64,000 nucleotides of DNA, taken from assembly GCF_006345805.1 (NCBI RefSeq), contig NC_043019.1, positions 25,977,360-26,041,359 on the forward strand, read 5' to 3'. Source of the stretch: Octopus sinensis. Its lineage: Eukaryota. Every line of letters begins with the position of its first letter. Position 1 is the first letter of the stretch. A program made the position numbers and the translations under genes. Below the pieces are notes generated by a model. The model saw only the letters and a program-made list of their open reading frames with translations. It did not search any database and was not told the origin of the DNA. Of the stretch, positions 1 through 43,000 are shown one piece after another.

Positions 1-40
1 AAATCTGTGGTATTGAGCAGAATATTTGCTGTAGCCCATC

Positions 41-143
<103 letters not shown>

Positions 144-166
144 GTGACTGTTGTTGTTGATTTCAG

Positions 167-307
167 ATTGTCGTGATGAAAATGTTGATTGTCGTTACTG
201 GGCCGCTACCGGAGAATGTAAAACTAGTGCAGAGTTCATGAATAAAGAATGTAGGAAATCTTGTCAGTTGTGTAAGTCCATGCACCAAACTCAACCAGCA
301 GTTGATG
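167..307 (+). CDS. ShK/ShKT domain exon A1 (141 nt, phase 1-1) of a multi-ShK protein; gene begins left of the window
   Basis: Acceptor gatttcAG ends at 166, donor GTAAGT at 308. Reads DCRDENVDCRYWAATGECKTSAEFMNKECRKSCQLCKSMHQTQPAVD with C-x6-C-x8-C-x10-C-x3-C-x2-C ShKT spacing. Confidence 0.9.
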
Positions 308-538
308 GTAAGTTTACCTTTGGATTCTTCTACCCGGTTGTCATTCACTTTTCCTGCTCCACCCGTTTTCTACTGTTGTTTCATTTAAGAAGTAACGAGA
401 TATTTATAAACAAAATGTAACAGAAACACCCTCCAGCTATTTCATAGCGAAGGGAATTTTACAAATGGCCGTTGGGATTGGCCTTGATTTGGGAATGGTG
501 GGTAGATTACTCGGAGTTTCTCGCAAGCCACGGGGTGG

Positions 539-576
<38 letters not shown>

Positions 577-939
577 CTTGAACGGCAAAAATCCCATTTT
601 ATTTCATTTTCTTCTTATGATAAAAATATGTTCACACCACGCCCTCGGAGAGAAACCAACAGGTGTAAAACCACACAGGTATTCTCTCTTTAATATATGA
701 ATAATGGTAGAGAGGCAGGTTGGATGACTCGTTAGCATGCCAGGCAAAACGCTCGGCGGCATTTCGTTCATCTTTAAGATCTGAGTTCAAACTCCGCCGA
801 GGTCGATATTGCCTTTCATCCTTTCGGGGTCAATAAAACATGTACCAGTGGTCAATGCAATTGATTTAACCCCACCGCCACCAGAAGTTGCTGGCCTTCT
901 GCCAAAATTTCAAAACCATTACTATTATTATTATTATTA

Positions 940-975
<36 letters not shown>

Positions 976-986
976 TATTATTATTA

Positions 987-1051
<65 letters not shown>

Positions 1052-1610
1052 GAGTGAGAGAGCAGCGCATGCCATCAAAGTGACACTGGATTAAAATATA
1101 CGAAGCCCAGTATACCCATCATAACCACCCGTCTGATAAGGGTACACCAGGCACATGCATCACAACCATATGTGCGCGACATGGTGATCTCATATCAAGG
1201 TAAACAGCGCATGACCTTGCAGGTGGGGCCCAGTTAGAATTTTCTTCAGGTCGAGTAGCCCATCCCGCTCAAAATGTCCCTGAATAAGGGTTGTTTAAGG
1301 ATGTTGAAAGAACCACCCATGTTTCCAGAGGTGAATTATTCAAACCCCAAAGAATCCCTCTCAACACATGGCTATGATGCTCCCCTGCTACTTCTGCTCG
1401 TGATCAGAGATGCACATATCGTCAGCCACTAAGGGACATGATCAACTGGTTAAGGTCAAACAACTGACAAGCAAATCTCTGGTATTGAGCAGAATATTTG
1501 CTGTAGCCCATCTTTTTATACCAAAACAAAATAATGTACATGATAACACTTCCAATCAGTTAAGATCAGAAGCCATGAGAGCCACTGCCTTGTACTGCAT
1601 CAGAGCATTT
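1052..1610 (-). mobile_element. Non-coding ~560-bp retroposon with (TAA)n 3' tail; related pieces at 1-42 and 62830-63021
   Basis: Same sequence recurs at three places and each abuts (TTA)n; no ORF; family unclassified. Confidence 0.7.
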
Positions 1611-1772
1611 AGTATTTATTTTTGTTGTTGTGGGTGGTAGTGTTGGTGGTGATGGTGGTGGTGGTGGTGGTGGTGTTATTATTATTATTGTTGTTGTTGT
1701 GGGTGGTAGTGGTGGTGGTGGTGGTGGTGGTGTTATTATTATTATTATTGTTGTTGTTGTTGTTGATTTCAG

Positions 1773-1883
1773 AATGTCTTGATCAACATAAGAAGTGTCC
1801 TCATTGGGCCTCTGTCGGAGAATGTGACAAGAATCCGAAATACATGCATAAGTACTGTGAAAAATCTTGTCAGTTGTGTGAAG
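1773..1883 (+). CDS. ShK domain exon B1 (111 nt, phase 1-1)
   Basis: gatttcAG / GTAAGT boundaries; ECLDQHKKCPHWASVGECDKNPKYMHKYCEKSCQLCE, canonical W..G.C..NP.YM...C.KSC..C. Confidence 0.92.
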
Positions 1884-2119
1884 GTAAGTTTATCTTTGGC
1901 TTCTTCTACCCGGTTGTCCTTCACTTTTCCTGCTCCACCCGTTTTCTACTGTTGTTTCGTTTCAAAACAAAATGTAATAAGAACACGCTCCAACTATTTC
2001 ATAGCGAAGGGAATTTTACAAATGGGCATTAGGATTGGTGTTGATTTAGGAATGGTGAGTACAATACTCGGAGTTTCTCGCAAGTCACGGGTGTGAATTT
2101 ATTCACCATTCTCTTAAAT

Positions 2120-2207
<88 letters not shown>

Positions 2208-2581
2208 TGTAAAACTTGAACGGCAAAATTCCGTTTTATTTTATTGTACTCTTATGGAAAAATACCTCCACACTACGCCCTCAGGGAGAAGCCAACGGGT
2301 GTAAAGCCACACAGATATTCTCTCTTTAATATGGTATGAATGGTGATAGGGCGATGAGCTGGCGGAATCGTTAGCACGCCAGGCAAAACGCTTGACGGCA
2401 TTTCGTTCATCTTTAAGTTCTGAGTTCAAACTACATCGAGATCGACTTTGCCTTTCATCCTTTCAGAGTCGAGTACCAGTTACGCACTGGGGTCGATGTA
2501 ATTGACTCATCATCCCCTCCCCCAAAATTTCAGGCCTTATGCCTATTGTAGAAAGGCATATTATTATTATTATTATTATCA

Positions 2582-2612
<31 letters not shown>

Positions 2613-2651
2613 TATTATTATTATTGTTGTTGTTGTTGTTGTCGATTTCAG

Positions 2652-2792
2652 ATTGTGCTGATCAAAATGAGGATTGCGCATTTTTGACCTCTATCGGAGA
2701 TTGTAGCAAGAACCCTAGCTACATGTATACAAAGTGTAAGAAATCTTGTAAAATGTGTCTTTCTAACGCTCACGTTCCAAGTGTATCTGAAA
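2652..2792 (+). CDS. ShK domain exon A2 (141 nt, phase 1-1)
   Basis: gatttcAG / GTAAGT; DCADQNEDCAFLTSIGDCSKNPSYMYTKCKKSCKMCLSNAHVPSVSE; six Cys kept, usual Trp replaced by Leu. Confidence 0.9.
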
Positions 2793-3436
2793 GTAAGTTT
2801 ACCTTTGGCTTCTTCTACCCGGTTGTCATTCACTTTTCCTGCTCCACCCGTTTTCTACTGTTGTTTCGTTTGAAAAAGTAACGAGATATTTATAAACAAA
2901 ATGTAATAAGAACATCCTCCAAATATTTCATAGCGAAGGGAACTTAACAAATGGCCGTTGGGATTGGTGTTGCTTTGGGAATGGTGAGTACAGTACTCGG
3001 AGTTTCCCGCAAGCCACGAGTGTAAATTTATTCATCATTCCCTAAAATGATTGAGGGGTGGCCTTGCTAGCCTTGTAGGCCTTGAACCAACACTTGAAAC
3101 CATTATTGTTGTTGTTGATGTTGTTGTTGTTGTTCTTATTGTTATCATCATAATCATCATCACCGTAGTCGTCATTGTCATCATCATCGTCATCATCATC
3201 AAGGCGGCGAGCTGGCAGAAACGTTAGCACCCCGGGCAAATTGCTTAGCCTTATTTCGCCCATCGGTAAGTTCTGAGTTCAAATTCTGCTAAGGTCGAAT
3301 TTGCTTTTCATCTTTCTGGAGTCCATAAACTAAGTGCCATCGACTAGTGTCGATGTAATCGACTAGTCCTTCCCTCACAAATTTCAGGCTTTTGTGCCTT
3401 TAGTAGAAAGGATTATCATTATTATTATCATTATCT

Positions 3437-4405
3437 TTTTTTCCTCTTCTTTCAAATTTGCTTCCATTTCTTGCCGAGTGTCTTCCCGACTCCTAGGGCA
3501 AAGAAAATCATAGTATACATTGGTAAGCCATTAAACTAAACTCACTAGTTCGTTCATTTTTTTTTAAGTTAAATTAAAATACATGGGTAGTAATAGTTCT
3601 CACATCGACAATGCTCTTCTTAATACGTGTGATGTACCAGTTAAGACAATCTTTTGCACTTCTTGCAGGGATGGTAAGCCAGGGATCATTCTCATATAAT
3701 TTTCGGTTCCCTTCTTGATCATTCCTAGTGCTCCTACGATCACTGGTATTGTAACCGCCTTGAGATGCCACATTTTCTCAATTTCCATGAGCAGGTCTTT
3801 ATATTTTCTGAGCTTGTCAAACTCTTTCGCCGAGATATTATGATCACAGGGGATGCTCATGCCAATCAATAAGCAAACTTTATTGTTTTGGTCTTTCACA
3901 ACAATATCCGGTTTATTGGCTTTGATGGTTCGGTCTGTATGTACTGGAAAGTCCCACAGAATCGTTACATTTTCTCCTTCAGTTACAGCTTCAGGGTGGT
4001 GATTATACCACTTGTCGGCAGTTTTGATATTGTAATGCCGACTTATTAGCCAGTGTAGATATTGGCCAACTCTGTCATGTCTTAATTTATACTCCACTGG
4101 TGCTAAGACTTTACATCCAGAGATTAGGTGGTCCACTGTTTCAATCATGTCGTTGCAGAATCGGCATTTTAGGTCTGCTCCATTTTTCATCACATTGGCC
4201 TGGTAGTTCCGGGTTAATAGGCTTTGATCTTGAGCAGCCAGGATGAAACCTTCGCTCTCTGCTTTTAGCCCTGGGCTCCGTAGCCACTGATGGGTTTGCT
4301 TCTGGTCAACATCAGCTTGTTTGCTACGGGCCACATATTTGCCGTGCAGAGGTTTCTCCTCCCACCTATCAGCCAATTGCTCGTGCGCTTTTTTCGTTGC
4401 CATTA
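3437..4405 (-). mobile_element. 5'-truncated R4/Dong-type non-LTR retrotransposon (CCHC knuckle + restriction-like endonuclease), copy 1
   Basis: CRFC..ETVDHLISGC, RHD, ILWDF, KPDIVV, K..KYKDL, IPVIVGALG; stop at 3600, then 3'UTR and TAA-type tail. Confidence 0.9.
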
Positions 4406-4414
4406 TTTTCACCT

Positions 4415-4445
<31 letters not shown>

Positions 4446-4511
4446 CATCATCATCATCATCATCATCATCGTCATCATAATCATCGTTATTATTATTATC
4501 ATCATTATTAT

Positions 4512-4960
4512 TATTATTCATATACACACAACAGATTAGGCTACTGGAAAAGAAAAAATTCTTAACATCGGGCTACAACAAGTAACCTTAGATGCCAAGA
4601 ACCCTCCTAAGTATCTTAGCTGTCCCTAATAAAACTGTACTAGGTTTTATGTCTATTTCCTCTATCCTTCTGTTCAAATCTTTAGGGATAGTTCCTAATG
4701 CCCCTATAACTACTGGGATACATTTCACCCTCATTTTCCATAGTCTCTGTAATTCAATGGCTAGGTCCTGGTACTTTGCTATTTTTTCTATACCTCTCAT
4801 ATTGATTTTTTTCATCATTTGGTGTAAAATTATTTATCTGGCACTTACTATTCTCTTTATCTACTACTACCAAATCAGGTCTTATAGCTTCTATTACTCT
4901 GTCAATCTGAATGTTAAAATCCCACAACAACTTATATTTCTTAGTTTCTAGTACTTTACT
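4512..4960 (-). mobile_element. R4/Dong-type RLE 3' fragment, copy 2 (different subfamily, frameshifted)
   Basis: KLLWDFNIQIDRVIEAIRPDLVVVDKE ... KYQDLAIELQRLWKM..IPVVIGALG ... LLGTAKILRRVLGI-stop. Confidence 0.85.
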
Positions 4961-5002
4961 AGGTACATTATTATTGTTGTTGTTGTTATTATTATTATTA
5001 TT

Positions 5003-5137
5003 GACTTTGCACAGCTTCAGCTGTTCACTACCAGTGAACTAAGGTAACACCTCTTATTTTACGAGCACCTTCCGGAGTATTCGAGTGGTTCCAAGCAGTA
5101 CTGTTTTCTTCAAGTGCTCCACACTTATTGCAGCCCT

Positions 5138-5139
<2 letters not shown>
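5003..5139 (-). mobile_element. R4/Dong-type RLE extreme 3' tip, copy 3
   Basis: Minus frame AAISVEHLKKTVLLGTTRILRKVLVK-stop, short UTR, TAA tail. Confidence 0.75.
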
Positions 5140-5199
<60 letters not shown>

Positions 5200-5209
5200 T
5201 CATTATTTG

Positions 5210-5965
5210 ATGAAAAACTCACAGCTTGTTTTGCTGGGTATGATGGAAAGTGTCAGCTGTCCACAGCCAGCAGACTAAGGTGACACTTGTTTTACTGGTC
5301 ATGCCTCAAGAACCGTGCGTAGAATTCTTGCAGCTGGAAGCAATGCTGATTTTTGTAGGAGTTCTACCTTTACATTTTAATCTTTTTCAGCCATTTTGGT
5401 AGTTGACTGCTGGGGCTTCCAAGTGCGCCAATTACTACTGGTATCACGTCTAGTCTCTTCATTGACCACAATATTCATATTTCCCACTTTAACTCATCGT
5501 AGTTGTTCAGTTCTCTCTTTGATCCTGTTGTCACCCACATATACTATGTCGAGTATTATGCATGTTCTTTCTCTTTTATTCACCAAAACAATGTCCGGCT
5601 TCCGATGTTTGATCAGGGGATCGCACTGAATCATTGCAGCCCACAGGATTATGCAATTCTCACTTTAGGTGACTCCTTCTGGAATTTTCACATACCAAGC
5701 CTTTGTTCTTTGAAGGCCGAGATTTCCAAAGAGCTCCCAATGGATTATTCCTTCCACATTGTCTCATGTCGTTTTTTCGTATTCGCCTTGTGCCAATTTC
5801 GGGCATTCGCTAACGATGTGCCATATCGTTTCACCCATCTCACCACACATTCTGCATTTGTCGCTGTCGGTAGTGCTGTCGCTACTACTCCACATAGTTA
5901 GTCCTTAACGCCTGTTCTTGTGCTGCGCATATAAGAGCTTCTATCCCCATCTACAGATCACTCCC
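5210..5965 (-). mobile_element. R4/Dong-type RLE 3' fragment, copy 4 (degraded)
   Basis: EALICAAQEQALRTNY, CRMCGEMGETIWHIVSEC, RKPDIVLV, IPVVIGALG, LLQKSALLPAARILRTVLEA; contains stops and frameshifts. Confidence 0.85.
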
Positions 5966-6063
5966 CCCGATTTCATTGCCACCGATCTTCTGTATCTGTC
6001 TTGGCGTTCGTATCTCGTATCTCTTATTATTATTATTATTGTTGTTGTTGTTGTTGATTTCAG

Positions 6064-6174
6064 ATTGTCTTGATCAACATAAGAAGTGTCCTCATTGGGC
6101 CTCTGTCGGAGAATGTGACAAGAATCCTAAATACATGCATAAGTACTGTAAAAAATCTTGTCAGTTGTGTGTAG
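6064..6174 (+). CDS. ShK domain exon B2 (111 nt, phase 1-1)
   Basis: gatttcAG / GTAAGT; DCLDQHKKCPHWASVGECDKNPKYMHKYCKKSCQLCV; 4 nt differences from B1. Confidence 0.92.
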   Translation: MVLINIRSVLIGPLSENVTRILNTCISTVKNLVSCV

Positions 6175-6411
6175 GTAAGTTTATCTTTGGCTTCTTCTAC
6201 CCGGTTGTCCTTCACTTTTCCTGCTCCACCCGTTTTCTACTGTTGTTTCGTTTCAAAACAAAATGTAATAAGAACACGCTCCAACTATTTCATAGCGAAG
6301 GGAATTTTACAAATGGGCATTAGGATTGGTGTTGATTTAGGAATGGTGAGTACAATACTCGGAGTTTCTCGCAAGTCACGGGTGTGAATTTATTCACCAT
6401 TCTCTTAAATG

Positions 6412-6448
<37 letters not shown>

Positions 6449-7226
6449 TTTATTGTACTCTTATGGAAAAATACCTCCACACTACGCCCTCAGGGAGAAG
6501 CCAACGGGTGTAAAGCCACACAGATATTCTCTCTTTAATATGGTATGAATGGTGATAGGGCGATGAGCTGGCGGAATCGTTAGCACGCCAGGCAAAACGC
6601 TTGACGGCATTTCGTTCATCTTTAAGTTCTGAGTTCAAACTACACCGAGATCGACTTTGCATTTCATCCTTTCAGAGTCGAGTACCAGTTACGCACTGGG
6701 GTCGATGTAATTGACTCATCATCCCCTCCCCCAAAATTTCAGGCCTTATGCCTATTGTAGAAAAGCATATCATTATTATTATTATGGTGGTGGTGGTGGT
6801 GGGGTGGTGGTGGTGGTGGTGGTGGTGAGCTGGCAGAATGGTTAGCACACTGGGCAAAATGCTGAGCGGTATTTCGTCCGTCTTTACATTCTGAGTTCAA
6901 AATTCCGCCGAGGTAAAATTTGCCTTTCATCCTTTCGAGGTCGATTAAATGAGTACCAGCTACGCACTGGGATCGATGTAATCGACTTTATCCCTACCCC
7001 CAAATTTGATTCCTTGTGCTTCCAGTAGAAAGGATTATTATCATTATCATTAATTATCATCTTAATTGGCTTGGTGATTGTGATTGTGGTGGTGGCAGTG
7101 GTGGGTGATAATATTGAAACGAGCAGGAAGCAAAATTGTTTGTTGTAGCTTCTTGAACTCTTCTCTTAAAATTCTGAGGGCGATAAAATATTACCAGGTA
7201 TGTAATGGGGTTCATCTAATTGTTTA

Positions 7227-7287
<61 letters not shown>

Positions 7288-7403
7288 TCTCGCTTTTTCT
7301 CTATCTATCTATCTTCCTTTACCTCCTTCTCCCTCCAGTAAATGCTTTATTTTGCGTTTATAACAAACCACATTAGAATTCCTGTTCACTTCTTTATTTG
7401 CAG

Positions 7404-7516
7404 CCTGCATTGATAAGAACGCTAAATGTGCTCAATGGGCCAAAAGGGGCGAATGTGACATAAATCCAGTTTACATGCATAAACACTGTAAACGGTCTTG
7501 CTTTATCTGTAGCTAA
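7404..7516 (+). CDS. Last coding ShK exon with stop codon
   Basis: Pyrimidine tract and ttgcAG at 7403; ACIDKNAKCAQWAKRGECDINPVYMHKHCKRSCFICS then TAA 7514-7516; donor GTAAGT at 7521. Not in the ORF track; read by hand. Confidence 0.9.
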
Positions 7517-9546
7517 ATTGGTAAGTATTACAAGCGATTCCCTTTCGTGTTTAGAAGCGTGTGTATATATGTTTATTTACAGAGCCGACTGGTTTCGCAT
7601 GTGATTGTGAGACAAACTTCTTTAACTCTCAAACATTCCTACACTTGCTATATGTTTCTAGAACCTACAGATGAGTGATACAGCTAGTCTTCTACGGATT
7701 CAGCTAGTCTACTATGGGTTCAAATCCACCCACAAGTACGTTTCTCTGATATAAAAATAAGAATGTAAAATATAGAAATAAGACTTGTGAAAGCTTTACC
7801 AAAGAAATCCTACCGTAGCAGAATAATATTGGAGACAGATTTTATTTTAGATTCTTTTCGATATTCAATTATTATTTAAAAATTAATGTAAAAATTGTAA
7901 ATCATGAAAATCTCTCTCAAGGAATAACAAATGTCAAATGTTTAACAAAGAATATAGTTTTCAAAGATGTTCTCTTTTAAGACTGCACCTTCAGTACTAC
8001 CAATATTGAATTCCTAATATTTTAAGAGGCTAAATCCACAGATTGGCTGTGTGATAAGTAGCTTGCTTACCAACAACATGGTCATGGGTTCAGCCCCACT
8101 GCGTGGCACCTTGGGCAAGTGTCTTCTACTATAGCCTCGGGCCAACCAAAGCCTTGTGAGTGGATTTGGTAGACGGAAACTGAAAGAAGCCCGTCGTATA
8201 TATGTATATATATATGCGTGTGTGTGTTTGTGTGTGCATATGTTTGTGTGTCTGTGGTTGTCCCCCCCCCATCATCGTGTGTGCATATGTTTGTCCCCCC
8301 ATCATCGCTTGACAATCGATGCTGGTGTGTTTACGTCCACGTAACTTAGCGGCTCGGCAAAAGAGACCGATAGAATAAGTACTAGGCTTACAAAGAATAA
8401 ATCCTGGGGTCGATTTGTTTGACTAAAGGCGGTGCTCCAGCATGGCCACAGTCAAATGGCTGAAACAAATAAAAGAGTAAAGTAAAAGAGTAAAGTTCCC
8501 AACAGTTTTATTGCTTCCGAAAGCAAGTATCTAATATAAAGGCCAGAAGGTGCTATTTTGACGTGTGATCTATAACCTAAAGGGAGATTACTTTGGGTTA
8601 CTTTTTAGTTTACTTTTCAATTTCTAAAACACCTTAACTGTTAGCGAAAGATTTTTTTTACAATAAATTCTTTGGTACACACTTAAATTTCCAAAATTGT
8701 TAGTATTTTAATAATAATAAAACCATATTCCCTTTATCTCTTAGTGAATAATAACAACCCAAGAATAAACAATACGATAATTGAAATAAGCGCGTAGATC
8801 ACACAAGTTTGGCATCCGCGAGTTTTACAACGTAAAGCAACTAAAAACTAAACAAGAGTAATCGCCCTTGAAGTTGCTGATTACGCACCAAAGTGTCACC
8901 GGCCAGAAAACGCAGGAAGTCCTATTATCGACATTAATATGGGAAGCACTCCGTCGTTTACGACGATGAGGGTTCCGGTTGATCCGAATCAACGGAACAG
9001 CCTGCTCGTGAAATTAACGTGTAAGTGGCTGAGCACACCACAGACACGTGCACCCTTAACGTAGTTCTCGGGGATATTCAGCGTGACACAGAGAGTGACA
9101 AGGCCGGCCCTTTGAAATACAGGTGAGAGAAAGTTGTGGTGAAAGAGTACAGCAGGGATCACCACAATCCCCTGCCGGAGCCTCGTGGAGCTTTAGGTGT
9201 TTTCACTCAATAAACACTCACAACGCCTGGTCTGGGAATTGAAACCGCGATCCTATGACCGTGAGTCCGCTGCCCTAACCACTGGACCATTGCGCCTCCA
9301 CCCGACATTAATATACACAGTGGCAGACTGGCCAGGTTGCCAGCTTGCCCGATGGCAAGTGGGACCCTGTGCCATTTGAATCCATATATGGGGGTCCATG
9401 TTAGTACGTAGGGGCCCATCCACTCAAGTTTGAGAATTTTTTATTCACTCCTGAGAGAATGCATTAATTATTTCTGCCTGGCTGTGTTTGTAGACAGTTG
9501 AAAAGAATACTTTTAACAAAAAAAAACAAAAAAAAGTTAAATGATA

Positions 9547-9950
9547 GCGCAGGAGTGGCTGTGTGGTAAGTAGCTTGCTAACCAACCACATGGTTCCGGG
9601 TTCAGTCCCACTGCGTGGCATCTTGGGCAAGTGTCTTCTGCTATAGCCCCGGGCCGACCAATGTCTTGTGAGTGGATTTGGTAGACGGAAACTGAAAGAA
9701 GCCTGTCGTATATATGTATATATATATAAGTGTGTGTGTATATGTTTGTGTCTGTGTTTCTCCCCCTAGCATTGCTTGACAACTGATGCTGGTGTGTTTA
9801 CGTCCCCTTCACTTAACGGTTCGGCAAAAGTGACCGATAGAATAAGTACTGGGCTTACAAAGAATAAGTCCCGGGGTCGATTTGCTCGACTAAAGGCGGT
9901 GCTCCAGCATGGCCGCAGTCAAATGACTGAAACAAGTAAAAGAGTAAAGA
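9547..9950 (+). mobile_element. tRNA-head CORE-like SINE, family A; other copies approx 8040-8490(+), 12563-12953(-), 16160-16405(-), 16805-17208(-), 18412-19285(-), 22560-22750(-), 26700-27092(-), 30050-30825(-), 44155-44660(- x2), 59673-60070(+)
   Basis: A/B-box-like head (tggctgtgtggtaag..gggttcagtccc), CORE-like ccttgggcaagtg, internal TA/CA tract, gagtaaaa tail. Confidence 0.8.
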
Positions 9951-10162
9951 GCATTGTAGTTGCGGGTGGGCCCCCTTAGTCTCCTGGCAACCAATATTCT
10001 TAGACCCAGTCCGCCATGGAATATGCTTATCCTTGTGTGTATGTGTATATATACATATTGATGAGAGTGTATGTGCATGCGTTCTTATATATTTATGAAT
10101 ATTTAACAGTTTTCTTTGATGACTTTCTTTGGTAATTTTTTTCTCTTATGTTTGTTTTTCAG

Positions 10163-10280
10163 ATCCAAGAAATTCCAGAATAACTCGATGCTTACCATTC
10201 TTCGTTAGAATTCATTTAAACCAACATTTACATACCGAGATTTATAACCATGAAATCAATAAAAATTATATTACTTTTAT
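10163..10280 (+). other. Probable non-coding terminal (3'UTR) exon of the ShK gene
   Basis: Strong acceptor ttctcttatgtttgtttttcAG ending 10162, AATAAA at 10258-10263; the unpaired donor at 7521 needs a downstream acceptor. Inference; the end is approximate. Confidence 0.5.
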
Positions 10281-10305
10281 ATATAAATATTTGATGATGA
10301 TGATG

Positions 10306-10367
<62 letters not shown>

Positions 10368-30774: not shown

Positions 30775-30967
30775 CATACATATATATATGACAGGGTTTT
30801 TTCAGTTTCCATGTACCAAATCCACTCCTAAACACAAAAAGAAATACAAAAATATATAACATGAAAAACAATAGCTGTGAGCAGGATTTGAAATCATGAC
30901 CATGCAGCTCATAATTCATCACCTAAACCTTACAGCCACAACAGCACAGAATGAAAGAGGTTGTTAC

Positions 30968-33900
30968 CTGCATTGCCAACTGTTGACACCTCGACTCCCT
31001 CAACTGGAGTCGGTGGTTGGCTTGGTTCAATTCCGCCTGAACACAGTTGTTTTGCTCGATACTCTTAGAAAATTGTTCCTGCAATTTCTGGTACTCTTCT
31101 TGGAACTGGTTTAGCCGGTCACCACCATTTTGGATGACCTGCAGCTGTGACTTGAGAGATTCATTCTCAAAATGAGCTTCTTTCAGTGAGCTGTTCACTT
31201 GTACCATATCCTGCTTCAACTGTGTGTTCTGGTTGGTCAGTTCCTGCACGTGATCTTCTAGTTCTTCAACTCTTTTAGTAAATGTTACTTGCTCTCGTTT
31301 CAAATGCTCCTGTTGCTCATGAGCAAAGCTTTGTTCTTTTTCCACTTGGGTCTGCATTTTGTTCCTAAGCTCTTCAAACTGCTTTGCCAAATGTGTGTTA
31401 TCCATCAATAGCTTGTTATAGCGTTCATTCACCACAGACAATTCCTCTTTGCTGGAAACCAACTCTTTATTTTGTAAAACTATTTGTTGTAACTCTGTAG
31501 TAAGCTTACTGTTTTCTTTCTTCAATCCATCTACCGACTGGCATGTGGTCTCTAAATCACGGCCTTCAGCAGTCAGTCTTTCAATTTGCTCATTCATGAT
31601 GTCCACTTCATTCTTCAAAAGAGACAAGCTTTCTTCTTTTCGACTCACTTCTAGCTCAGCCTCTTCGAGCTGTCTCTTCCAAACTTCCCTAATGCTAATT
31701 TCCTTTGTTAACCGATTTACTTCTGCTGTCAATTCTTCAATTTCTTTCATATTCTGTCTCAACATTTCTTTGTTAGCTTCCAGCTCCATTTTAACAGTTT
31801 GGAAATTTTCTTCTAAAAACATCTTTTCCTGCTCAAGTTCTTCTTCTCGTTTCTGAGATTCCCTTAACTGCTCTCCAATGGCACCAGCTTCTTGGGCTTC
31901 TCTTTTGTACAGTTCTCTTTCATTCATTTCATTCTTTATCTTTTCTGACAACATCTGATTCTCATCCTTAAAATGGATTATCTCACATACTTTAGCTTCT
32001 AATTCTTTTTCAAGATTAGACAGCCTCACTTCTAGATCCTTTTTCGCCGACTCATCTCTATCATCAGATTCCCTCTTTGTCTTTTCTAACTCTGCGACTA
32101 ACATTTCCTGTTCCTGCAACAGTTTATTTTTTGCTTCTTCAAACTGTTTCCTTAACGTCTGCACTTCCTTACGATGGGTAACAACTTCTTCTCTGGCAGC
32201 ATCCACTTGATCTTTTAAGTTATCCCGCTCTTCAGACAAACCTTGTAACTGAATTTCAACTTGACTGCAATGATCCTTAGCAATGCTGCTATTTAACATT
32301 TCTTTCTCATATTTCGAAACGCTCTCTCTCAACTTGTGGTTTTCACTCTTCAAATTATCCTGACTTTCCTTCTGTTTCTTAACAAGTTGTTGGAAGTCTT
32401 CTAGGTCTGCATAGACATTTTTACATTCCCCTTCTAAATTTGTGATTTTATTCAACAAGGTAGACTTCTCCACAGAATACTGATTGCTGGCAGTCTCCAT
32501 TTCCTGTTTCAGATTGATCCACTTATTTTCAAAATCAGATTTTTCTGCCAAGACATTTTCAATTTGTTTTGAGAGTTTATCACATTTTGACTGCAACTCA
32601 GAATTACTCTTAGACAACTTCTGATTCACTTTCTCATTTTTTTTCTTAACATTCTCAAACTCTGCCAGTTTTTCAGCAGCTTCACTCTGAGACTTTTGTC
32701 CTTGTTGATAGAATGCTGAAAGTTCTTGATATTTTAGTTTTTCAGAACCAAGGTCATTCTGGAGTTGAATAACTTTCGATTCCTCACCTGCCTTCTGTAT
32801 CTTTAGATTTTCCATTTCTTTTAAAAGATTATCATTTTTATCTTTAAAAGATTTCAGCTTCACTAATAACTTCTCACATTTTTCTGTTGCTATTTGATGT
32901 TTATTTTTTAGAGTCTCATGCTCTCGAGAAAGACTTTCAAATCTCTCTTGCACATCATGTAACTCTTTCTCTATTAGCAAACTCTCAGAGGAATTCTTAA
33001 CCTCTGACCTCTGAATAGATTCTTTCTCAATGCGAGCACTGTATAAGCTACCTTGATGTTCTTTCACTAGACTTGGTTCCAAAGGCACTTCTGCAGAATA
33101 CGTTTCGGAAGATACAGGATTACACTTCTCCTTAAGCATAGAGTTTTCTTTCTTTAATTGTTCTAGATTTTCTGAAAGCACCATTTTTTCTTTAGAAGAT
33201 TGCAAGAGATCTTCAGTAAATTTTTCAATATCTTCTTCCATTTTCGCGATATTTTCATGACTCACACTCAAACTTTCTTCCAAAGCTTTCCTCTTCGAGT
33301 CAGACTTCTGGAGTTCAGAATTTAACCGATTATTTTCATTAATAGACTCCTTCCACTCAGAAGTTAACTGTTCCTTTTCTAAACTCATCCGACTAGATTC
33401 TACCTTCAGTTTTTCATACAAAATCCTTAAATCCGGCTCAATATCAGAAGCAGCCCTTTCACTTTCTCTCTCTCTGAAATATTCTAATTGTTCTTTATAT
33501 TCCACAATTAACTGTTCCTTTTGCTGAACTTCATTTGAAACAGCTTCCAGTTGGTTTTGAATCTGTTTTAGCAGGGCACCTTTGCTGTTTATCTCTTCTT
33601 TATTTAATTGCAATTCTTCTACTGTTTGGTTATATATTTCCTTAAGCTTCTTCAGTTCTTCAACAGTATGTTGGTTCTGTTTGCTAACATCATCCAAAGC
33701 ATTTTTTAGCTCTGAAATTACAGTTTCTTTTTCAGAAATCTCATTACCAACACCAATCATTTTCTCTTCAGAAGCTTTCAGGAGCAATGATTGCTCTTCA
33801 ATACATGCATTCTTTGCATTAATTTCTGCTGACAATTCCTGCATCTTCAGGGCCATTTCTTTCAGCCGATGATCATCCTGATCCAGCAGCTTTTGTTCCC

Positions 33901-35329
33901 ATTTTGAAGCGTTTAGTTTGTAATCTTCCAACTCTTTGTTCTTGTTGGTGATTTCTTCTTGAAGAAGATGAATTGTATGGCCAGACTCGTCCAGTTGTCC
34001 ATTGAGAAATGTAATCCTGACATCTTTCTCCGTTTCTGTCTCCATTGTCTTCAAACTCTGCTCAACTTCATAAACTCTGTCTTGCAATTCTAGCATTTTG
34101 TGATTTTTCTCTTCAATGGTCGATAGAAGATCTTCCTTCTCCAAATTTTGGGACAATAATAGTTCCTGTTTCTGATTGAAGTCTGATAAAAGGATTTCCT
34201 GTTCTTGACTTAACTGTTTCAACATCTGATTCTCCTGCTGACTTTCGACCATTACATGCTTTGCCGCTTCTAAAGTAGACACCAATTTCTGCAGCAGTGA
34301 CAGTGTTGCTTTACATGGTTCTGTACCAGAACTGCTAGACTCCTCCATTCCTTTCTCAAACAGGTTTGCTCCAGCAGTGTCTTTTCCCTCCGCCTCCGCC
34401 AATTCCGGCCACTCGCTCAATACAAGAGAAACTTTCTGTTGAAAAATTGAATTCATTGAATTAATTTCTTCAAATACTTTCGCATTCATTTCTTTCATTT
34501 CATCTTTGCCAAGTTTACTCTCATTCTTTGCCTCTTGAACCTGTAATTTCAATTTCTTGGCCGTTGCTAAGACTTTCAAATATTGGTTTTCTTTATTTTG
34601 AAGCGATTTCTTTGTTGAATCGAGAGCTTCTTTCTCTTTCTGAAGAGCATCCTCCAACTCCGCTATCTTTCCTTCACTCCCTTCTTTCACGTTAAACGAA
34701 CTCGTTAATTGTTCTTCTAATTCCTGCATGTTTTCCAAAAGTGACATTATCTTTTCATCTTTTTCTTTCAATCTCCCTTGCTGCTCCTCATGCGTCTTCA
34801 TATTCTCAGCAATCTCCAAAGTCAGATGCTGCAGTTGCTGTTCTCTCACCGAAAGTTGCTCCTTCAGCAACGACACATCTTTCTTGTTTTGCTCCTCTGC
34901 GGAATCATCCTCTTGCTCTTGCTTATTCTTTCTTTCCAATAGTTCTTTCAATTCATTCACATGAGAGTCTTTCTCAACCAAACTTTTATTAAGCAAACCC
35001 AAATTCCCTTCAGCTTCTTGCAAATGAGTCGACAGTTTATTAATCTCAGCAGACTTCTCCTCAACTTGCGATGAAAGTTCCTGTATTTGCAAGTCTTTCA
35101 ACCTAGAATGTTCCTCCGTTGATCTTAATTCTATCTTAACCTGTTCCATTTCGTGTTGCACATCCTGCATAGAAGACTGCATTTCTTGGTTGGTTGTGAC
35201 TAAATCGGTCAACTTAGTCTGCAGTTCTTCGTTATATTTTTGGACTGAGGCCAACTGTTGATCAACTTGGAACTTCCCTTGCCTCACTTCATCTAATTCC
35301 AGAGATATTTTATCCAGTTCCACAGACGT
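30968..35329 (-). CDS. GOLGB1: Giantin-like giant exon (4,362 nt, 1,454 codons), continuous coiled coil
   Basis: Within the 1472-aa ORF; acceptor ttgcAG before TSVEL, donor GTAACA after QLAMQ; E/K/Q/L heptad-rich. Confidence 0.92.
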
Positions 35330-35959
35330 CTGCAATGACATTGGTTAGAAACAAGAGTTAGAGTTTTGGAAATAAGTTCACATACACACGGTCGTCTGTT
35401 TCTTTTTAAATAACAACAACAACAACATGTGAATAAATAAATAAAAACCAAGCAAACCCAAACATAACAACAATACCTATTATTATTTTTATTTCTAATT
35501 TTGAAACAAGGCAAGAAATTTTGAGGGGAGGGGCATGGTGTTTACATGAGCCCCAATGCTCAAACTTGCACTTATTTTATCAACCTTGAGAGGATGAAAG
35601 GCAGCATTTAAACTAAGAATGCAAAGAGCCAGAAGAAAATGCCCCTAAGCATTTTGTCTGACATAGGGAATGGTTCAGCCAACTTGTTGCCTTAGTAATA
35701 ATAATAATAATAATAATAATCCTTTCTGTTATAGGCACAAGGTCTGAAATTTGGGGAGGGGACTAGACAATTACATCGACTCCAGTGTTTCACTGGTACT
35801 TAGTTTGTCGATCCTGAAAGGCCGAAAGGATGCAAGGCAAAGTCAACCTCGGCAGAATTTGAACTCAGAATGTAGTGACAGGCAAAATACGACTAAGCAT
35901 TTAGCCCGGCGTGCTAACGATTCTGCCAACCTGCCACCTTATAATTAATGATGATGATG

Positions 35960-35994
<35 letters not shown>

Positions 35995-37046
35995 CCTTTC
36001 TACTATAGGCACAAGGCCTGAAATTTGGGGGCAGGGGTTAAGCTGATTGCATCGACCCCAGTTCTCAGTAGGCACTTATTTTAACAACCCCAAAAGGATG
36101 AAAAGCAAAGTTGGCCTTGATGGAATTTGAACTCAGAACACGAAGACAGACGAAATACCGCCAAGCATTTTGCCTGGCATGCTCACAATTCTGCCAGCTC
36201 ACTGCCTAAATAATAATAATAATCCTTTCTACTAGAGCCACAAGGCCTGAAATTTTGGTGGGGACAGGGGTAGTCCCTAATAAGTACCAGTGCTCAAGTC
36301 GGATAAGTTGTCGGACTAAGCATTTTGTCTGACAACTTAATGATTCTGCCAAAATATTTCTGATCAAAGCACCAAATATTTTATAGAAGGAAATATCTGG
36401 TTAATGGCATCAACTGCTTGTCTGCTACTTTAGGTTCATTGGCCTCCATAAAGATGAAAGACAAAGTAGGCCTTGGCAGGATTTGAACTCAGAACATAAT
36501 AGTCCATTCTGCTGATTCTATTATATACCACCACCACCACCACCAACACCATTACCACCACCATCACCATCACCATAAAAACAATAGTTCTTAGTGTAGG
36601 TATGAGATATGAAACAGGGGGGAAGGGCGTTAACCAACAGCATTGACCTCTAGTGCTTGGTCGGTACTTTTATGTCATTGATGAATAACAAAACCCCTAA
36701 GACCTAAAACAGAGTGAAAGAAGTACACCAAGGCCTTAACCACAACACATCATGTGGAATACTGTGAATGCAACAGAAAACAAGTAAGCAACACAAGACA
36801 CTACACACGTATGGCACACACAGAACTGTACTTTGTTATGCAGGGAAAACATACGATAAAAAAAAAATGTTGAAAAATGAATAATGATGAGGGATTTTTG
36901 CAGAATTGCACATAACCCATGCTTTTAGTAGAGGAAGGAGACGAAGGGTCTGGAGGAAATATGGAAGAAAATACATAGAAGGAATCTCCAATGCAAAGAG
37001 GGAAAGTAAAGAGCATCGAAATAACAGTGTAGTAATTAATCCTTAC

Positions 37047-40000
37047 ATGTTGAGGCGTCGGCTGAGTATCTCGTGTAGTGTCAAGGTTCTGTGTAAGGAC
37101 AGGGTGGTTGCTGCCATCCAGTTCCGAGACATTTTGGCCACTGATGGAAGACATTTCTTCTGGACATTTCACAGACAATTCCTGCTGTTTTGTCAACAAA
37201 CTCCTAAGTTTTTCAATTTCACTGCCCTGGTTGTTACAAACATTGGCTACATGAGAATAGGCAGCAGCGAAGGCAGCAAAATGTTTCTCCAGACTCTGCA
37301 AATTCTCCAGATTTGCTGTGCCGCCAGGCAGCTTATTTACCAAACCGTCTGTGACATCGTCATGGCATTCCTCTTCTTCCTCACTCTCTTCCATTATGGT
37401 TTCCAATGTGGAACCATGGACATCTTTCACATAAGTCAAAAGACCAGAGATTCTACTTTCAAGAGCATCTAAAGAGTTTTTCACCCTCTTTGTCTCTTCC
37501 GAATGACTGACGGCTGTGCTGTGGCTATCATCACAAGCATTCTGTAGTCTAGCAACTTCTTTGACAAGTTTCTTACGCTCAGAAGACAGAGCTTCCATAG
37601 TTTCACTCATTTTCTGAATGGCTTCTTCTTTAGACAAAACTACAACATTCAACTCTGATACAATGTCCAGGAACCTAGCATTGTCAGCATCATGAGACAG
37701 TGCCAGGTCTTTCAAATATCCCCGAAGCCAGTTTAAAAAATTCACACCTGTCTGTGTATCTGAATCATCCAACGGGCACATTTCAGACTTTGATTTCACC
37801 AAGTCAACCTGTTCTTCTGTCGATGTAGAATGTTCCAGATAGTTGCTATTGTTGACAATTTTTTTTAAATCTTCTAAAACAGCCTCGTATGATTTTGGAT
37901 TAGCTTTCAAGCTTTTTTCTTTGATATCGTTTTGGATTTCTTTGAGACAGCTCATGAAAGATCCAAAAACTATGAAAATCTCTTGTTGGTACCTTTGGTA
38001 CTGACTCAAGAAATGGCTTAACTTTTCTAAAGCTTCTGCAGTTTTAAAACTTTTTTGTTGACATTCATCTAAACTTTGAAATAGTCCTGAACCCAATTCT
38101 TCAAAGAGTTGCTTGAAATGATTCTGTAAAGAATCTGCTTCAGGTTTGTGGAACTGATTTTGTGAAACCAGTTCCAAAATCTCTTTTACCAATAATGAAA
38201 ATGATTCTTGAATTGTTTTACAGCAGTTTCTTGTAGCACAAAGCTCTTCATTCCTCGCAGATAATGTCATCTGAAGCTGTTTAATTCCATCTTCCGAAGA
38301 CAACTGTTTACTATCAGCAGCAGAGTTTAGTTCCAATATCTCAGCAGTTTTAACATCTAAACCATCCTTCAGTTCGGTCACTAAAATTTCAAAGTCATTA
38401 ATCTTTATTTCTTTTTCTTTCAGTTGTTCATCCAGCCTCACAGCCTTTGAGTTCACCATCTCCAACTGCTTCTTCAGGGCTTCTATCTCAGCATTATTTT
38501 GATGACAAGATTTCTTTAACTTTACACACATTTGCTTCAAGCGTTCATTTTTATTGCATAAATCTCTAACTTCATTTCTTGCCACCGATTCATCCCCTTT
38601 AGGTTCGTTTTCAACTTCCGTATCCTTCACATTCGGGGTCTCATCCAAATATCTTTCCTTAGCTGGTTCTTTCTCAGCAGTTTTAATTTCAGAAAAAGAA
38701 GATTTCCAATTTCCAATTTTAGTTAACACTTCTGACATTTCAGTTTTAATATTTTCAACCTTAATTGCAATTAACTCGGCATTTTCACTGACTTTTTCAT
38801 TAACTTCAGCTTCGTTTGACTCTTCATTAAGACTTACTTCAGGCGACAATATTCCACTCAAACTTTTACAAATATCATTTCTCCAAAACATTTTCAGTTC
38901 TTCAAAATGTTTAGAATAAGCTTCTGTCTTGGACCGCAATTCCATGAGCTCATCTCGCAAACACATCTCAGATGCACAAGAATCCGACGTACCATATGAT
39001 TTTTCACTCAAAGTTGGAGAACTAACTCTTAGAATTTCACTTCTCACCGATTCCACACTTCCATATTTGGAAGCTGACATACTAGAAAGACACTTTTCAG
39101 TAGTTTTTTTGGTCAAAGATGACTTTCTCTTTACATCTTCTGGGTTCTTGTTGACTTTTTTATCTCCAATTTCTTGACTTTTTGTTCGGCGCTTAAGTAA
39201 GGGTGTATTTTTTTCAGTTTTTGGTTTTGTCCCTGGCACCTGCTTTTTCAGTCGTTCTTTATCGATTTTCATTTGACTTATTTTACTTTCCATATCCATA
39301 ACCTTTTGGGATAAAACCTGTTTGTCCCTCAACACTTTTTCAAGACGGCTTTCTATATCATGACATTTTTGATGTTCCCGTAACACTTGTTCCAGATGGT
39401 TCTTCACTTTATCCCGTTCTTGACAAGTCGACACCAGTTCCATATCCACTTTAGCCAACTGCTCAGCAACAAGATCTTTTTCCACCAATTTCTTCTTCAG
39501 ATCTTCTTCCAATTTCCTGATGGTAATCCTCAAGAGCTCCACCTCATCCATCTGAAACTCCAACATTTCCTTCTCCTTCAGCACTTCAATTAACCTAGTC
39601 TCCAACTCCTCTTTCTCTTCTACCAATCTACTATTTTTCTCCAGCTTGACTTTCTCTTCATCAAATTCAACCAAATTATCTTCATTTAACACAGAATCTG
39701 TAAGTCTGGGATCACCAATAAATTGATCTTTTCTTTTTATCAACTCCAACACCTGATCCTGAGAAGATCCTTCTAAAGCCTGTACAAACGCCTTCAGGCC
39801 TTGCGATTCTTTGCCTAAACAAACAACTCTGTCAAACAAGACATTCAGTGACACTTCGAGAATATCTTCTTCCCTCAGGTTTTCCTTATTAACTGTGGCT
39901 GGAAGAGTAACATTGATTCCAGTCTGTTGGCATTTTGCAAAGAAATTCAAAATAGTTTTTTGCATAGGTGCTGTATTGTGTGAAATTTCCTCAGGTAGAC

Positions 40001-43000
40001 TTGAAATATTTGGATCTTTTTTGCTGCTTATCTCAGCTGATTCTTCAGTTGCAAGAACTCTCTCTTTTTCAACAACAAATTGGGATTGACTAGGATCCTG
40101 TGCAACCACTTTCTCTTTAGAGCACTTTCCAGAAGTTTCACTTGTGTTTACATCCGGGATGCTCACATGTGTTTCTTTCCAAGTCTGAAGAACATGAAAC
40201 AAATTTGAAAATTTATCAACCAAATTTTCAAGTTGATTATTTTCATTTTTATCATTAGAACATACAAGAAAATCAGAATCCTGTGATGGCATCTGCTCTG
40301 ACCCATTAACCAAAATACAAGCACAGTTCTCATAGATTTCTGTCAGTTGTTTGGCAGCTGAACCGAATGCCAATTCCCTGTCCATTTGTATTTGTTGTAA
40401 GTTTTCTAGCATCAATTTCTGTTCTTGCAAATATTTACAAAATTGGTTAATGCGGCCAGGAATGCTTTCTTCTTTCAGAGCATCTTTCCCAAAGTTTGAA
40501 TTTAAAGAGTCTAATAATGAAAATAGGTTTTCTCTTTCTTGAACTAACTCTTTTAATTTCTTTATAATAATTTTGTTCCCACATTCCTCTTTCGAAGAAA
40601 TATCAGATTCATTGTGTCTTTCAGAGGAATCAGCAGCTGTGTTACCATTATTCAAAGAAGATGTGCTCTTTGATTTTCTTGTAGACTTTTTAGCATATTT
40701 TTTCTTTAAAGCGCCATCAACATTGGAATTTGGGGTCTGTTTCTTCACATTCTTAAAGGGCATCCCAGAAGACTGTAATCTTGGTGGGACAGGTTCCGGT
40801 AAAGACTCTTTACCATAATTATTCAACAAACAAGCATCAATCAATTGATTAATTTCAGAACAATCTTCTTCATTGATGGAGATTTTAGTTTTAAGTTGAG
40901 CACATTCTTTTGACTTCTCAACCAATTCCTTCTTCAACCTTCCTACCATTTCTTGAGACTTATTTCCTTCATCTATCTGGAGTCTGAGATTACTGATCTC
41001 AGTAGTAAGGACTTGATTCTTGTTTATTAAATCGGTAATAGTTAGTTCGGATTCTTTCTTTACCTTTTCAAACGAGTCTTCCAGTGCCAGCTGAGAATCA
41101 TGAAGAACACCTTGAAATCTAGAAAGCTCCAAATTTGTTTCCTCCAGATTATATTCAGATTCTTTCAGTTTTTGGCAGAGTATATCATGTTCTTGTTTCA
41201 GATTTTCATAAGACTTCCTAAAACTTTCCACGGCGACCTCTCCTTCTTTTACACTATTCTTCATTTTTACCAAAGATTTCTCACTCGTGACCCCTAGTTC
41301 TTTACTGTCTTTTAGTTCAGATTGAAGATCTTTGATAACTTGTTGATAGAACTGGTTCTCTTGGAGCAACATCTGGAATTTCTCTTTACCAACTTCTTGA
41401 GATTCTTTAGTTTCATCAACAGACATTAATAAATTTCTAATCAAATCTTCCTTCTCCTGTAAACTCACTTTAAAGTTAACAATATCCATTTCAGCTTCAT
41501 GTTTCTCTGACTGCAACAATCCTATCTCTTTTACTAATCTATTTTCATTTGCCACAGATTTCTGAAACTGTTCCTCAAGACCAGAAATACAGCGATTCCT
41601 CTCAGCCAACTGATTATCAAAACTACTTTGTAGTGAAGAGAGTTCGTTGCTTAAACTAAGATTCTCTTCTTGCTGTTTTTCAGCAGCTCTATTAGAAGAT
41701 GTTATCAGACTATTTTGATCCTGCAGTTCTTGAACTGTCTTTTGATGATAATTTTCAAATGATTCCTTTATATTTTTATTAACTGTTTCAATATTTACTC
41801 TAAGCTCTTTTTCTACTTCCAACCTGTTACCAAGTTCCTTAAGTTTGTCTTCCAAATCTTTCTTCTCCAAACACGCTTCTTGTAGCATTGCACTGTTTTC
41901 CTTTATTTTATCTTCAGCATTTTTAAGATTAGTTTCAAGTTCCCCGATGGTACCATCTCTCTCTGACATCACCTGTTCAGCTTTAACTAATTTACCTGCA
42001 ATATCTTCATTATCTTTGGCCAGCATCTTCTCTTTCTCGTGTAACAACAACTGGTTGTTATCATATTCAGATAGTTTTAACAAAAGCTGATTGTTCTCCA
42101 CCTCTAACTCTTCCACTCGATCTTTGCGTTCAGCAAGAGATTTTTCAAAGGTAAGATTACTAGCTGAAACTTCAGACAATTTAGAATTAGACGAAGCAAG
42201 TGCTTGTTCAAGATCATTAATTTGATTAGAGCATTTTTCTAAATGAACATTTAATTGAGATTTTTCCTTTTCTAGTTCATCAGAGTGATGTTGAAGTAAA
42301 CCTTCCTTCTCAGACAACAAATCTTGTAGCTGCCCTATCTTTTTGGCTAATTCTAAATTAGTGTTAGTAACAAGTTGTATTTCACGTATACCATTTTCAA
42401 CCTCAGCATGCATGCATTTCTTTTCATGTGACACTAATTCTAAATTTTCAGACAAAAGTCTCACCTTCTTTCCTTGTTCTTCCAGCAAAAGCTCCAGATC
42501 TTGCCTGTTGGTTTCCCTAGAAATTTCCTGGTCTTTTAAGAGCCTCACTTCTTCCTGTAGACTGGTTTGTTGTTGCATCAATGCCTCTACTTGATTTTTG
42601 GCATCAGTCAGTTGCTGCTGCATGAAGTTGGAACTGTCTTGAACATTTTTAATCTGTTGTGTTAAGTCATTTTCACGAACCTGGCTTTGTTGTAATGACA
42701 AATTTAAGCTTTCAACATTGTCCTGTAAAGAAGTGATTTTTACATCTTTCCCTTCCATAAGTTTCTTCACTGCTAGTTCTTGCTGTGAAGAATCTGATTG
42801 TAGATTCATCAAAGACAACTCATTCTGGCTACATTTATTTTCCAATTCCTCAACGTTTGATTTAAGTGATTCATTATTTTTTTCGGAATGTTGTAGCATT
42901 GATTCAAGCCGAACTTTCTCTGATAACAATCCTTCTATTTGAGAAATAACTAATCCAATAGACTCTGACAGAGGCATTTCCATTTCAGAATCTGTTGATA

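Follow-up and report, generated by a model that had tools for sequence, protein, structure and literature searches.

We analysed a 64,000-nucleotide stretch of the Octopus sinensis genome (the window; contig NC_043019.1, positions 25,977,360 to 26,041,359 of the forward strand) and found that it carries the 3’ half of a gene of octopods whose secreted product is composed of ShK-type (ShKT) domains. Each domain is encoded by its own exon, and four of the five exons (A1, B1, A2 and B2) sit in a tandemly repeated cassette of exon plus intron. Within these cassettes the exons have diverged more than the adjoining introns, a difference that is real and statistically sound and that reaches 60% exon identity against 99% intron identity. 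The explanation we favor, and to which we attach about even confidence, is that the introns evolve in concert by gene conversion and the non-scaffold residues of the exons change fast, with intron homogenization accounting for the larger part of the contrast.

The five exons lie within positions 1-7520 of the window, on the plus strand. Exons A1 (167-307, 141 nucleotides (nt), with an 11-residue linker) and A2 (2652-2792, 141 nt) encode a ShKT domain followed by a linker; exons B1 (1773-1883, 111 nt, without linker) and B2 (6064-6174, 111 nt) encode the domain. These four were defined by splice consensus, translation and a Pfam ShK match. A fifth ShKT exon, C (7404-7520, 117 nt), lies beyond the range given in the first-pass annotation of this DNA; it is the last coding exon, carries the stop codon TAA at 7514-7516, and stands outside the amplified unit as a non-cassette exon. 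All five exons are in phase 1 at both ends, and the lengths of the four cassette exons are divisible by 3. Acceptors read tttcag (the four cassette exons) or tttgcag, and donors are of the G|GTAAGT type. The first base of the window falls within an intron, and the gene’s 5’ part is therefore not included. The donor of exon C falls 4 nt past the stop, so an intron in the 3’ untranslated region (UTR) follows; a possible 3’ UTR exon, judged by its sequence signals, is found at 10164-10290 on the plus strand (acceptor tttttcag at 10156-10163, AATAAA at 10258-10263).

The spliced product of 205 residues matches Pfam ShK (PF01549) five times (E=1.9e-40, 137.6 bits, against a curated cut-off of 20.9 bits), and the spacing C-x6-C-x8-C-x10-C-x3-C-x2-C is found in all five exons. 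The first-pass proposal of a multi-ShK gene built by duplicating symmetric phase-1 exons is borne out. By sequence, the nearest solved structures are the metalloproteinase ShKT domains 2mcr and 2k72, not the anemone toxins. A database search with the spliced protein gave one weak match only, and exact-protein look-ups for two open reading frames (ORFs) of the window and for both Octopus bimaculoides gene models described below found no record. The modules of the protein would bind other proteins or possibly ion channels.

Each cassette is ordered as (ATT)n(GTT)nGATTTCAG, exon, ~250 nt of unique intron, (GT)n, ~130 nt of unique sequence, a short interspersed nuclear element (SINE) and (ATT)n, and this terminal (ATT)n tail runs into the next acceptor. 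The acceptor motif, (ATT)n(GTT)n GATTTCAG, is present upstream of all four cassette exons, including B1 (1733-1772) and B2 (6024-6063); all cassette features lie on the plus strand. Alignment delimits the conserved 5’ part of the A1 intron at 308-535, followed by a distal part (539-905) comprising (GT)n, ~130 nt of unique sequence and a tRNA-derived SINE, with an (ATT)n tail that reaches ~1052. The B1 cassette intron (1884-2625) comprises the conserved start, (GT)n, the unique segment, the SINE and (ATT)n, and that of B2 (6175-6785) the same series through the SINE. In the A2 cassette the conserved 5’ part aligns at 2793-3053; the cassette is truncated after 3053, and the remaining intron, to 6063, is full of transposable elements. 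The first 36 nt of the intron occur exactly four times in the window, as against none in 100 shuffles, and a metagenome scan for the intron motif gave 0 matches.

The tRNA-derived SINE has the same position in the A1, B1 and B2 cassettes and in a cassette around V3, the third ShKT exon of the nas-13-like metalloproteinase gene of Octopus vulgaris (genomic locus OX597836.1, here L001). Such SINEs and (ATT)n tracts are abundant in the window’s genome. We considered the possibility that the conserved intron is a dispersed transposable element or introner and rejected it: the unique parts were found only in the four window cassettes and once in L001, and within the cassette intron the embedded SINE is the sole multi-copy part.

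Comparison of the cassettes confirmed the counts on which the first-pass annotation rested. A1 and A2 share 84 of 141 exon positions in an ungapped alignment, and the first 75 nt of the introns that follow them differ at 1 position (0-3 for any pair of the four copies). B1 and B2 differ at 4 of 111 exon nt, and the following 239 intron nt are identical (239/240). Three of the four differences are non-synonymous, each replacing a Glu, and one is silent (CCG/CCT), as had been reported; the first replacement is, however, E/N rather than E/D, as its codon is split with the final A of A2. Over the 105-nt ShKT core, exons of the A1, A2 and B cassettes differ by 28-34%, spread roughly evenly over the three codon positions. 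The corresponding divergence is 3.7-6.2% for intron nt 1-80, 11-12.5% for nt 101-228, 14-17% for the segment after (GT)n and 16% for the well-aligned SINE core, and 16-19% for the distal intron overall.

The exon excess over unique intron is significant for the ShKT core (Fisher p=1e-7 to 6e-3; p=1e-7 to 1e-2 across the exon-intron comparisons), and the earlier claim of exons more diverged than their introns stands. The contrast of 60% with 99% identity draws on the intron’s most conserved 75 nt. Relative to most of the intron (11-19% divergent) the excess is ~2-3 fold; relative to the first 75-80 nt it is 5-9 fold, and 30-fold for the A1/A2 pair.

We searched for relatives of the array by profile. 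The closest were astacin (M12A) proteins with C-terminal ShKT arrays and ShKT-only proteins, at ~45% identity, two of them O. bimaculoides entries; the best database relatives are astacin-plus-ShK proteins. M12-ShK proteins have been reviewed (PMC6409789). The O. vulgaris ‘metalloproteinase nas-13-like’ (paralogue P0155) has an astacin domain, and its exon V3 (L001 39680-39820, 141 nt) sits in the same cassette as the window exons, (GT)n and SINE included. Its last coding exon has the stop-then-donor layout seen in exon C. Downstream of exon C, a non-coding patch (7598-7759, plus strand) is 92.6% identical to the paralogue’s 3’ region, and window positions 10040-10310 are 82.6% identical to L001 44251-44524. 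Because the cassette, the last-exon layout and 3’ patches of 93% and 83% identity are shared, sequence comparison shows common descent and makes the window gene a nas-13-like paralogue with an amplified V3-type cassette. Molluscan astacin-ShKT proteins such as nas-13-like and O. bimaculoides A0A0L8FN55 likewise end in a C-terminal tandem ShKT array, and nas-13-like shares the homologous cassette and 3’ end with the window gene, but nas-13-like has a single cassette copy where the window gene has at least four. Astacin-ShKT proteins also carry a catalytic domain, whereas the O. bimaculoides orthologue models of the window gene, of which the window holds the 3’ part only, do not.

The orthologue is O. 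bimaculoides LOC106871202 (XP_014773035.1, or P0154)/A0A0L8HE40, which holds counterparts of A2, B and C. The A2 orthologue (LOC106871202 residues 293-339) has 28/35 core identity and keeps the junction ‘VSE|N-C’; the B orthologue (domain 387-421) is identical at 26-27/35, with B2 at 27/35 as the positional and sequence orthologue; and the C orthologue (domain 434-468) at 26/35. For A1 there was no clear O. bimaculoides orthologue, the best candidate being identical at no more than 17/35. Thus LOC106871202 has a five-domain array like that of the window gene but lacks a counterpart of A1 and of a second B copy, while the window lacks counterparts of its domains 214-248 and 340-374; the linkers also differ in length, as far as protein models can be compared. 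In both O. bimaculoides gene models the ShKT array follows immediately on a signal and propeptide of astacin type, with no astacin domain between them, and one of the two skips the A2-orthologue exon. The signal-peptide exon of the orthologue is identical to that of nas-13-like at 37/37.

These relatives also bear on the quality of the assembly. The B1 and B2 cassettes, exons included, are ~99% identical across ~0.8 kb in a microsatellite-rich region, as would be seen if B1/B2, or the whole array, were collapsed or duplicated haplotypes. We consider such an artifact extremely improbable, since A1, A2 and B differ clearly from one another, a five-domain array with matching junctions appears independently in the O. 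bimaculoides protein models, and the O. vulgaris paralogue carries the same cassette. The B1 and B2 cassettes have been homogenized as wholes or re-duplicated within the array.

Several patterns, the whole-cassette likeness of B1 and B2 among them, point to homogenization of the introns. In intron nt 1-80 there are 7 V3-specific changes and 1 array singleton, whereas nt 101-228 have 8 and 15 (Fisher 0.015), and all three mutually incompatible 2:2 site partitions occur in the intron. Different stretches of the intron thus have different genealogies. Measured against the paralogue, divergence forms a mosaic: the sequence directly flanking exon C differs by 24-34%, as much as the exons do, the patch at 7598-7759 by 7% and the cassette introns by 12-16%. 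Between V3 and the window cassettes, exon cores differ by 29-34%, intron nt 1-80 by 11-15%, nt 101-228 by 12-16.5% and distal segments by 15-30%.

Exons group by orthology: V3 of O. vulgaris matches its O. bimaculoides orthologue at 26/35 residues, and the array exons at 17-19/35. Orthology of the domains also makes the A2/B split older than the split from O. bimaculoides. Yet at the start of the intron, paralogues differ no more than orthologues do. When the intron start was translated as read-through, 5/24 codons differed between the O. vulgaris and O. bimaculoides V3 orthologues (a hand count of small numbers), and 3-4/24 between V3 and the array paralogues (also small numbers, with a single O. 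bimaculoides intron). Gene conversion is the mechanism that we infer from these sequence patterns.

Between cassette pairs (NG86 and maximum likelihood), non-synonymous divergence (dN) was 0.29-0.41 and synonymous divergence (dS) 0.38-1.15, giving a dN/dS ratio (omega) of 0.33-0.93 that never exceeded 1. Old ShKT pairs (comparisons with V1, V2 or C) had dN of 0.28-0.51, saturated dS and omega of 0.1-0.25. Cassette exons equal the old pairs in dN, and the omega of those pairs is only 0.1-0.25; for their synonymous age, cassette exons have thus accumulated disproportionately many amino-acid changes. In the four copies of the cassette, 16/35 residue positions carry 3-4 states; sites with at least three states number 14/105 in the exon and 3/208 in the intron (p=3e-5), a 9-fold enrichment, and replaced codons have 1.5-1.7 nt changes each. 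The six cysteines and several scaffold residues are invariant, and no copy contains a stop codon. Between octopus species, orthologous ShKT exons are 74-80% identical, whereas the family’s signal-peptide exon is unchanged. Non-scaffold residues turn over very fast on the kept six-cysteine scaffold, probably under weak constraint and possibly with some adaptive change.

The intron provides a second yardstick. Synonymous change at amino-acid-conserving codons was 0.14-0.63 (mean ~0.4) and intron divergence (K) 0.04-0.19, so that exon synonymous divergence is ~3-fold higher (Poisson p ~0.02). Introns are therefore not a simple neutral yardstick of exon age. A competing explanation is the toxin-like acceleration of the first-pass annotation, in which cassettes of recent origin would have introns diverging at the neutral rate and exons driven 3-30x faster by positive selection. 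Such a history would fit the excess of exon over intron divergence in every pair, the excess of codon positions 1+2 over unique intron (p=4e-6 to 7e-3), a dN/K_intron of ~2-3, the multiply changed codons, the enrichment of multi-state sites and the exon excess between B1 and B2 (see below). The same pattern has been described for conotoxins, in which Dn and Ds are both raised in the mature-peptide exon and intron ends are conserved (PMC3862624), and for viperid three-finger toxins (‘ASSET’; PMC2474615). It sits poorly with an omega below 1, with the raised synonymous divergence, with an A2/B split older than the split from O. bimaculoides, with intron genealogies that differ along the intron and with the exon C flanks, which put the unconverted paralogue background at 24-34%; moreover, the units are domains of one protein and not separately secreted toxins. 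We regard it as quite unlikely.

Of the first-pass claim, the gene structure, the exon excess and a fast turnover of non-scaffold residues survive; a dN/dS above 1 was never seen, and the introns appear to be homogenized. That annotation had set its claim against a dN/dS well below 1 with saturated synonymous sites. The results come near this outcome, short of an omega well below 1 and of saturation in dS.

The pattern does resemble that of venom genes. In crotaline PLA2, venom-gene exons are accelerated and introns conserved. Venom genes share with the window gene an exon divergence far above that of introns, conserved intron starts, microsatellite-rich introns, raised dN and dS in the variable exon, and a disulfide scaffold that is kept while surface residues turn over. 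They differ in being separately expressed toxin genes rather than domain exons within one gene, in the dN/dS above 1 typical of their variable regions, and in the signs of homogenization in the window introns. ShK K+ channel toxins are short single-domain peptides, whereas the window product is multi-domain. The protein may have a role in venom, immunity or mucus, as the first-pass annotation suggested, but its closest kin are the ShKT tails found on astacin metalloproteases rather than toxins.

At the opposite extreme, the cassettes could be old duplicates whose introns alone were homogenized, with exons evolving at an ordinary rate under normal purifying selection. The excess of dS over K_intron, an omega below 1, and an exon divergence (28-34%) close to the unconverted background near exon C (24-34%) all agree with this. 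However, cassette-pair omega is 2-5x that of old ShKT pairs, orthologous ShKT exons have changed far more than the signal-peptide exon, and B1 and B2 show an exon excess of their own (see below). We consider homogenization with ordinary exons very unlikely.

A further alternative concerns the intron start itself. Pyrimidines make up 72-76% of the CU-rich first 80 nt of the A1 intron, a stretch that matches the other cassette copies at 94-96% identity and that may act as a splicing enhancer. The first ~80-230 nt might thus be held by purifying selection as a single-stranded splicing regulator of skippable symmetric exons. Similarity does decay from the donor (4-6%, 11-12.5% and 16-19% divergence), the segment is less structured than shuffled sequence (z of +1.65 to +2.0), the exons are symmetric and divisible by 3, and one of the two O. 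bimaculoides models includes the A2-orthologue exon that the other skips. But in V3 these 80 nt have changed by 11-15%, at the pace of the remaining intron, and short protein-binding motifs would not require near-total identity along 75 contiguous nt. The idea that ShKT exons in general need a CU-rich start was rejected, as the introns of V1, V2 and C are unrelated to it and 41-54% pyrimidine. An Rfam scan of the whole window matched no family, and no RNA structure was found in the intron start or across the exon-intron junction (z +0.34 over 371 nt; z +1.65 to +2.0 over the first 77-93 nt). Constraint of this kind, in place of conversion, is unlikely.

The cassette introns are also open in the exon frame for 34-49 codons (308-420, 1884-2032, 2793-2895 and 6175-6323). 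A retained intron would append a hydrophobic tail, GKF[TI]FGFFYPVV[IL]HFSCSTRFLLLF..., followed by basic residues. Coding read-through as an account of the intron start was rejected, since two of the three differences are non-synonymous and nucleotide identity is too high for constraint at the protein level. The open frame is probably a by-product of the CU-rich sequence.

Against concerted introns as the larger part of the contrast, several points must be set. The conversion tests have low power, with four independent lineages and short segments. Similarity peaks right at the donor, which is unexpected if conversion tracts were simply blocked by diverged exons, and purifying selection on a splicing element could give the same donor-side peak. 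The NG86 estimate of dS may be inflated by multiply changed codons. Codon positions 1+2 (27-34%) exceed even the distal intron (16-19%) in the A1-B1 comparison (p ~0.01). Finally, the young B1/B2 pair, in which conversion meets no barrier, has 4/111 changes in the exon and 5/652 in the flanks (p=0.03), including three charge-changing Glu replacements; this excess is beyond the reach of conversion and favors genuine exon acceleration.

With these points weighed, we propose the following course of events. The gene descends from an astacin (M12A) ‘nas-13-like’ metalloprotease gene, of which one exon-plus-intron cassette (the parent’s third ShKT exon with its intron, (GT)n, SINE and (ATT)n/(GTT)n) was amplified at least four times in tandem, presumably through unequal recombination within the microsatellites and SINE tails. 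The introns would then have been homogenized, above all over the first ~80-230 nt after the donor, as cassettes underwent gene conversion or exchanged sequence unequally. Conversion tracts would end where homology collapses, at the diverged exon or linker. The exons would keep their six-cysteine scaffold and change quickly at surface positions, under weak constraint and possibly some diversifying selection, and would thereby persist as islands of divergence.

Islands of divergence under gene conversion have been described (PMC3728101), as have the concerted introns and selectively maintained exon differences of the primate L/M opsins (PMC3213168). As in the window, the paralogous introns of such systems resemble each other more than the exons do, their site patterns form mosaics, and exons, but not introns, group by orthology and stand out as sharp islands of divergence; what sets the window apart is that its units are exon cassettes of ~0.9 kb inside a single gene. 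Major histocompatibility complex class I/II genes likewise combine concerted introns with maintained exon differences. The L/M opsin type of concerted introns is as close a precedent as the conotoxin and snake-toxin genes.

A more far-reaching possibility, which we think decidedly unlikely, is that the array works as a built-in diversity generator: homogeneous introns would sustain unequal exchange, exon gain and loss, and skipping, with the exons under diversifying selection. If so, octopods would have obtained from an astacin gene a fast-evolving, secreted poly-ShKT effector that lacks the protease; it could serve in saliva, skin or immunity, with ion channels or proteins of prey and pathogens as targets.

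Other features of the locus concern its repeats and the gene models of its relatives. A repeat of ~0.6-0.8 kb in the A1 intron (918-1689) is 90-96% identical to copies in the O. vulgaris locus. Copies lie at L001 40932-41711, 17872-18452 and 20236-20415 and at 62803-63010 of the window; one of the L001 copies is in the corresponding intron downstream of the V3 cassette, and the first 45 nt of the window, just upstream of A1, are the 3’ end of the same repeat. Because copies in the window and the O. vulgaris locus are 90-96% identical, the element is, judged by sequence, young and multi-copy, and the species of the window stands close to O. vulgaris. Two ~430-nt SINE-like copies (8040-8490 and 9550-9950), 84-91% identical to several L001 copies, lie in the putative 3’ UTR intron, and these insertions explain its length of 2.3 kb here versus ~0.2 kb in the paralogue. 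Within the A2 intron, the minus strand of 3600-4505 contains a 301-aa ORF with a Cys/His-rich segment and no Pfam match, which looks typical of the C-terminal part of a retroelement ORF; similar-looking, decayed ORF-like stretches are seen at 4560-4960 and 5220-5900.

The model XP_014773035.1 is chimeric over residues 1-116. It starts with ShKT exons of a neighboring astacin gene, reads ~40 codons into the conserved cassette intron (RKFSFGFFYSVAIHFSCSTRF...), and continues with the 5’ UTR and signal peptide of the poly-ShKT gene. The read-through looks like a model artifact; because the model is chimeric in this way, it suggests that an astacin gene and the poly-ShKT gene are adjacent on the same strand in O. 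bimaculoides. In the same model, the linker after the first array domain (residues 249-291) is a tandem repeat, ‘P(P)NP[AV][IV]FELPNPVVIE’, with a weak likeness to what the intron start would encode if read through (F.F..YPVVI); exonized intron sequence and chance are both conceivable sources. In nas-13-like, the fourth ShKT and last coding exon (L001 42564-42681) has a 1-nt indel relative to exon C that shifts the frame; as annotated, the protein stops at ‘...CIDENSQCSNLGLKE’ and lacks what remains of the domain. The remaining sequence is legible in another frame, and the exon may be a decaying domain or an assembly error.

Elsewhere in the window, two giant minus-strand ORFs (30923-35341 and 36801-44060; 1472 and 2419 aa) encode Glu/Lys/Leu-rich coiled coil and are presumably two huge exons of one gene. 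They gave no Pfam match, and a database search with them found no close orthologue, the best matches being 36-54% identical Logan transcripts with PF24161 or PF14662.

ShKT arrays are common in the secreted proteins of mollusks, yet there are few descriptions of their growth and diversification in terms of DNA. The locus is a further case of phenomena of already known kinds. In it a whole exon-plus-intron cassette, microsatellites and SINE included, has been amplified and turned over between octopus species, with introns that are near-identical while domain surfaces have been rewritten on a fixed cysteine scaffold. It provides a compact natural case for telling gene conversion from selection, and a caution that exons evolving faster than introns do not suffice to prove positive selection of the venom type. 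Should the gene turn out to be expressed specifically in glands, and its changes to be adaptive, it would add an astacin-derived poly-ShKT family to the effector biology of cephalopods.

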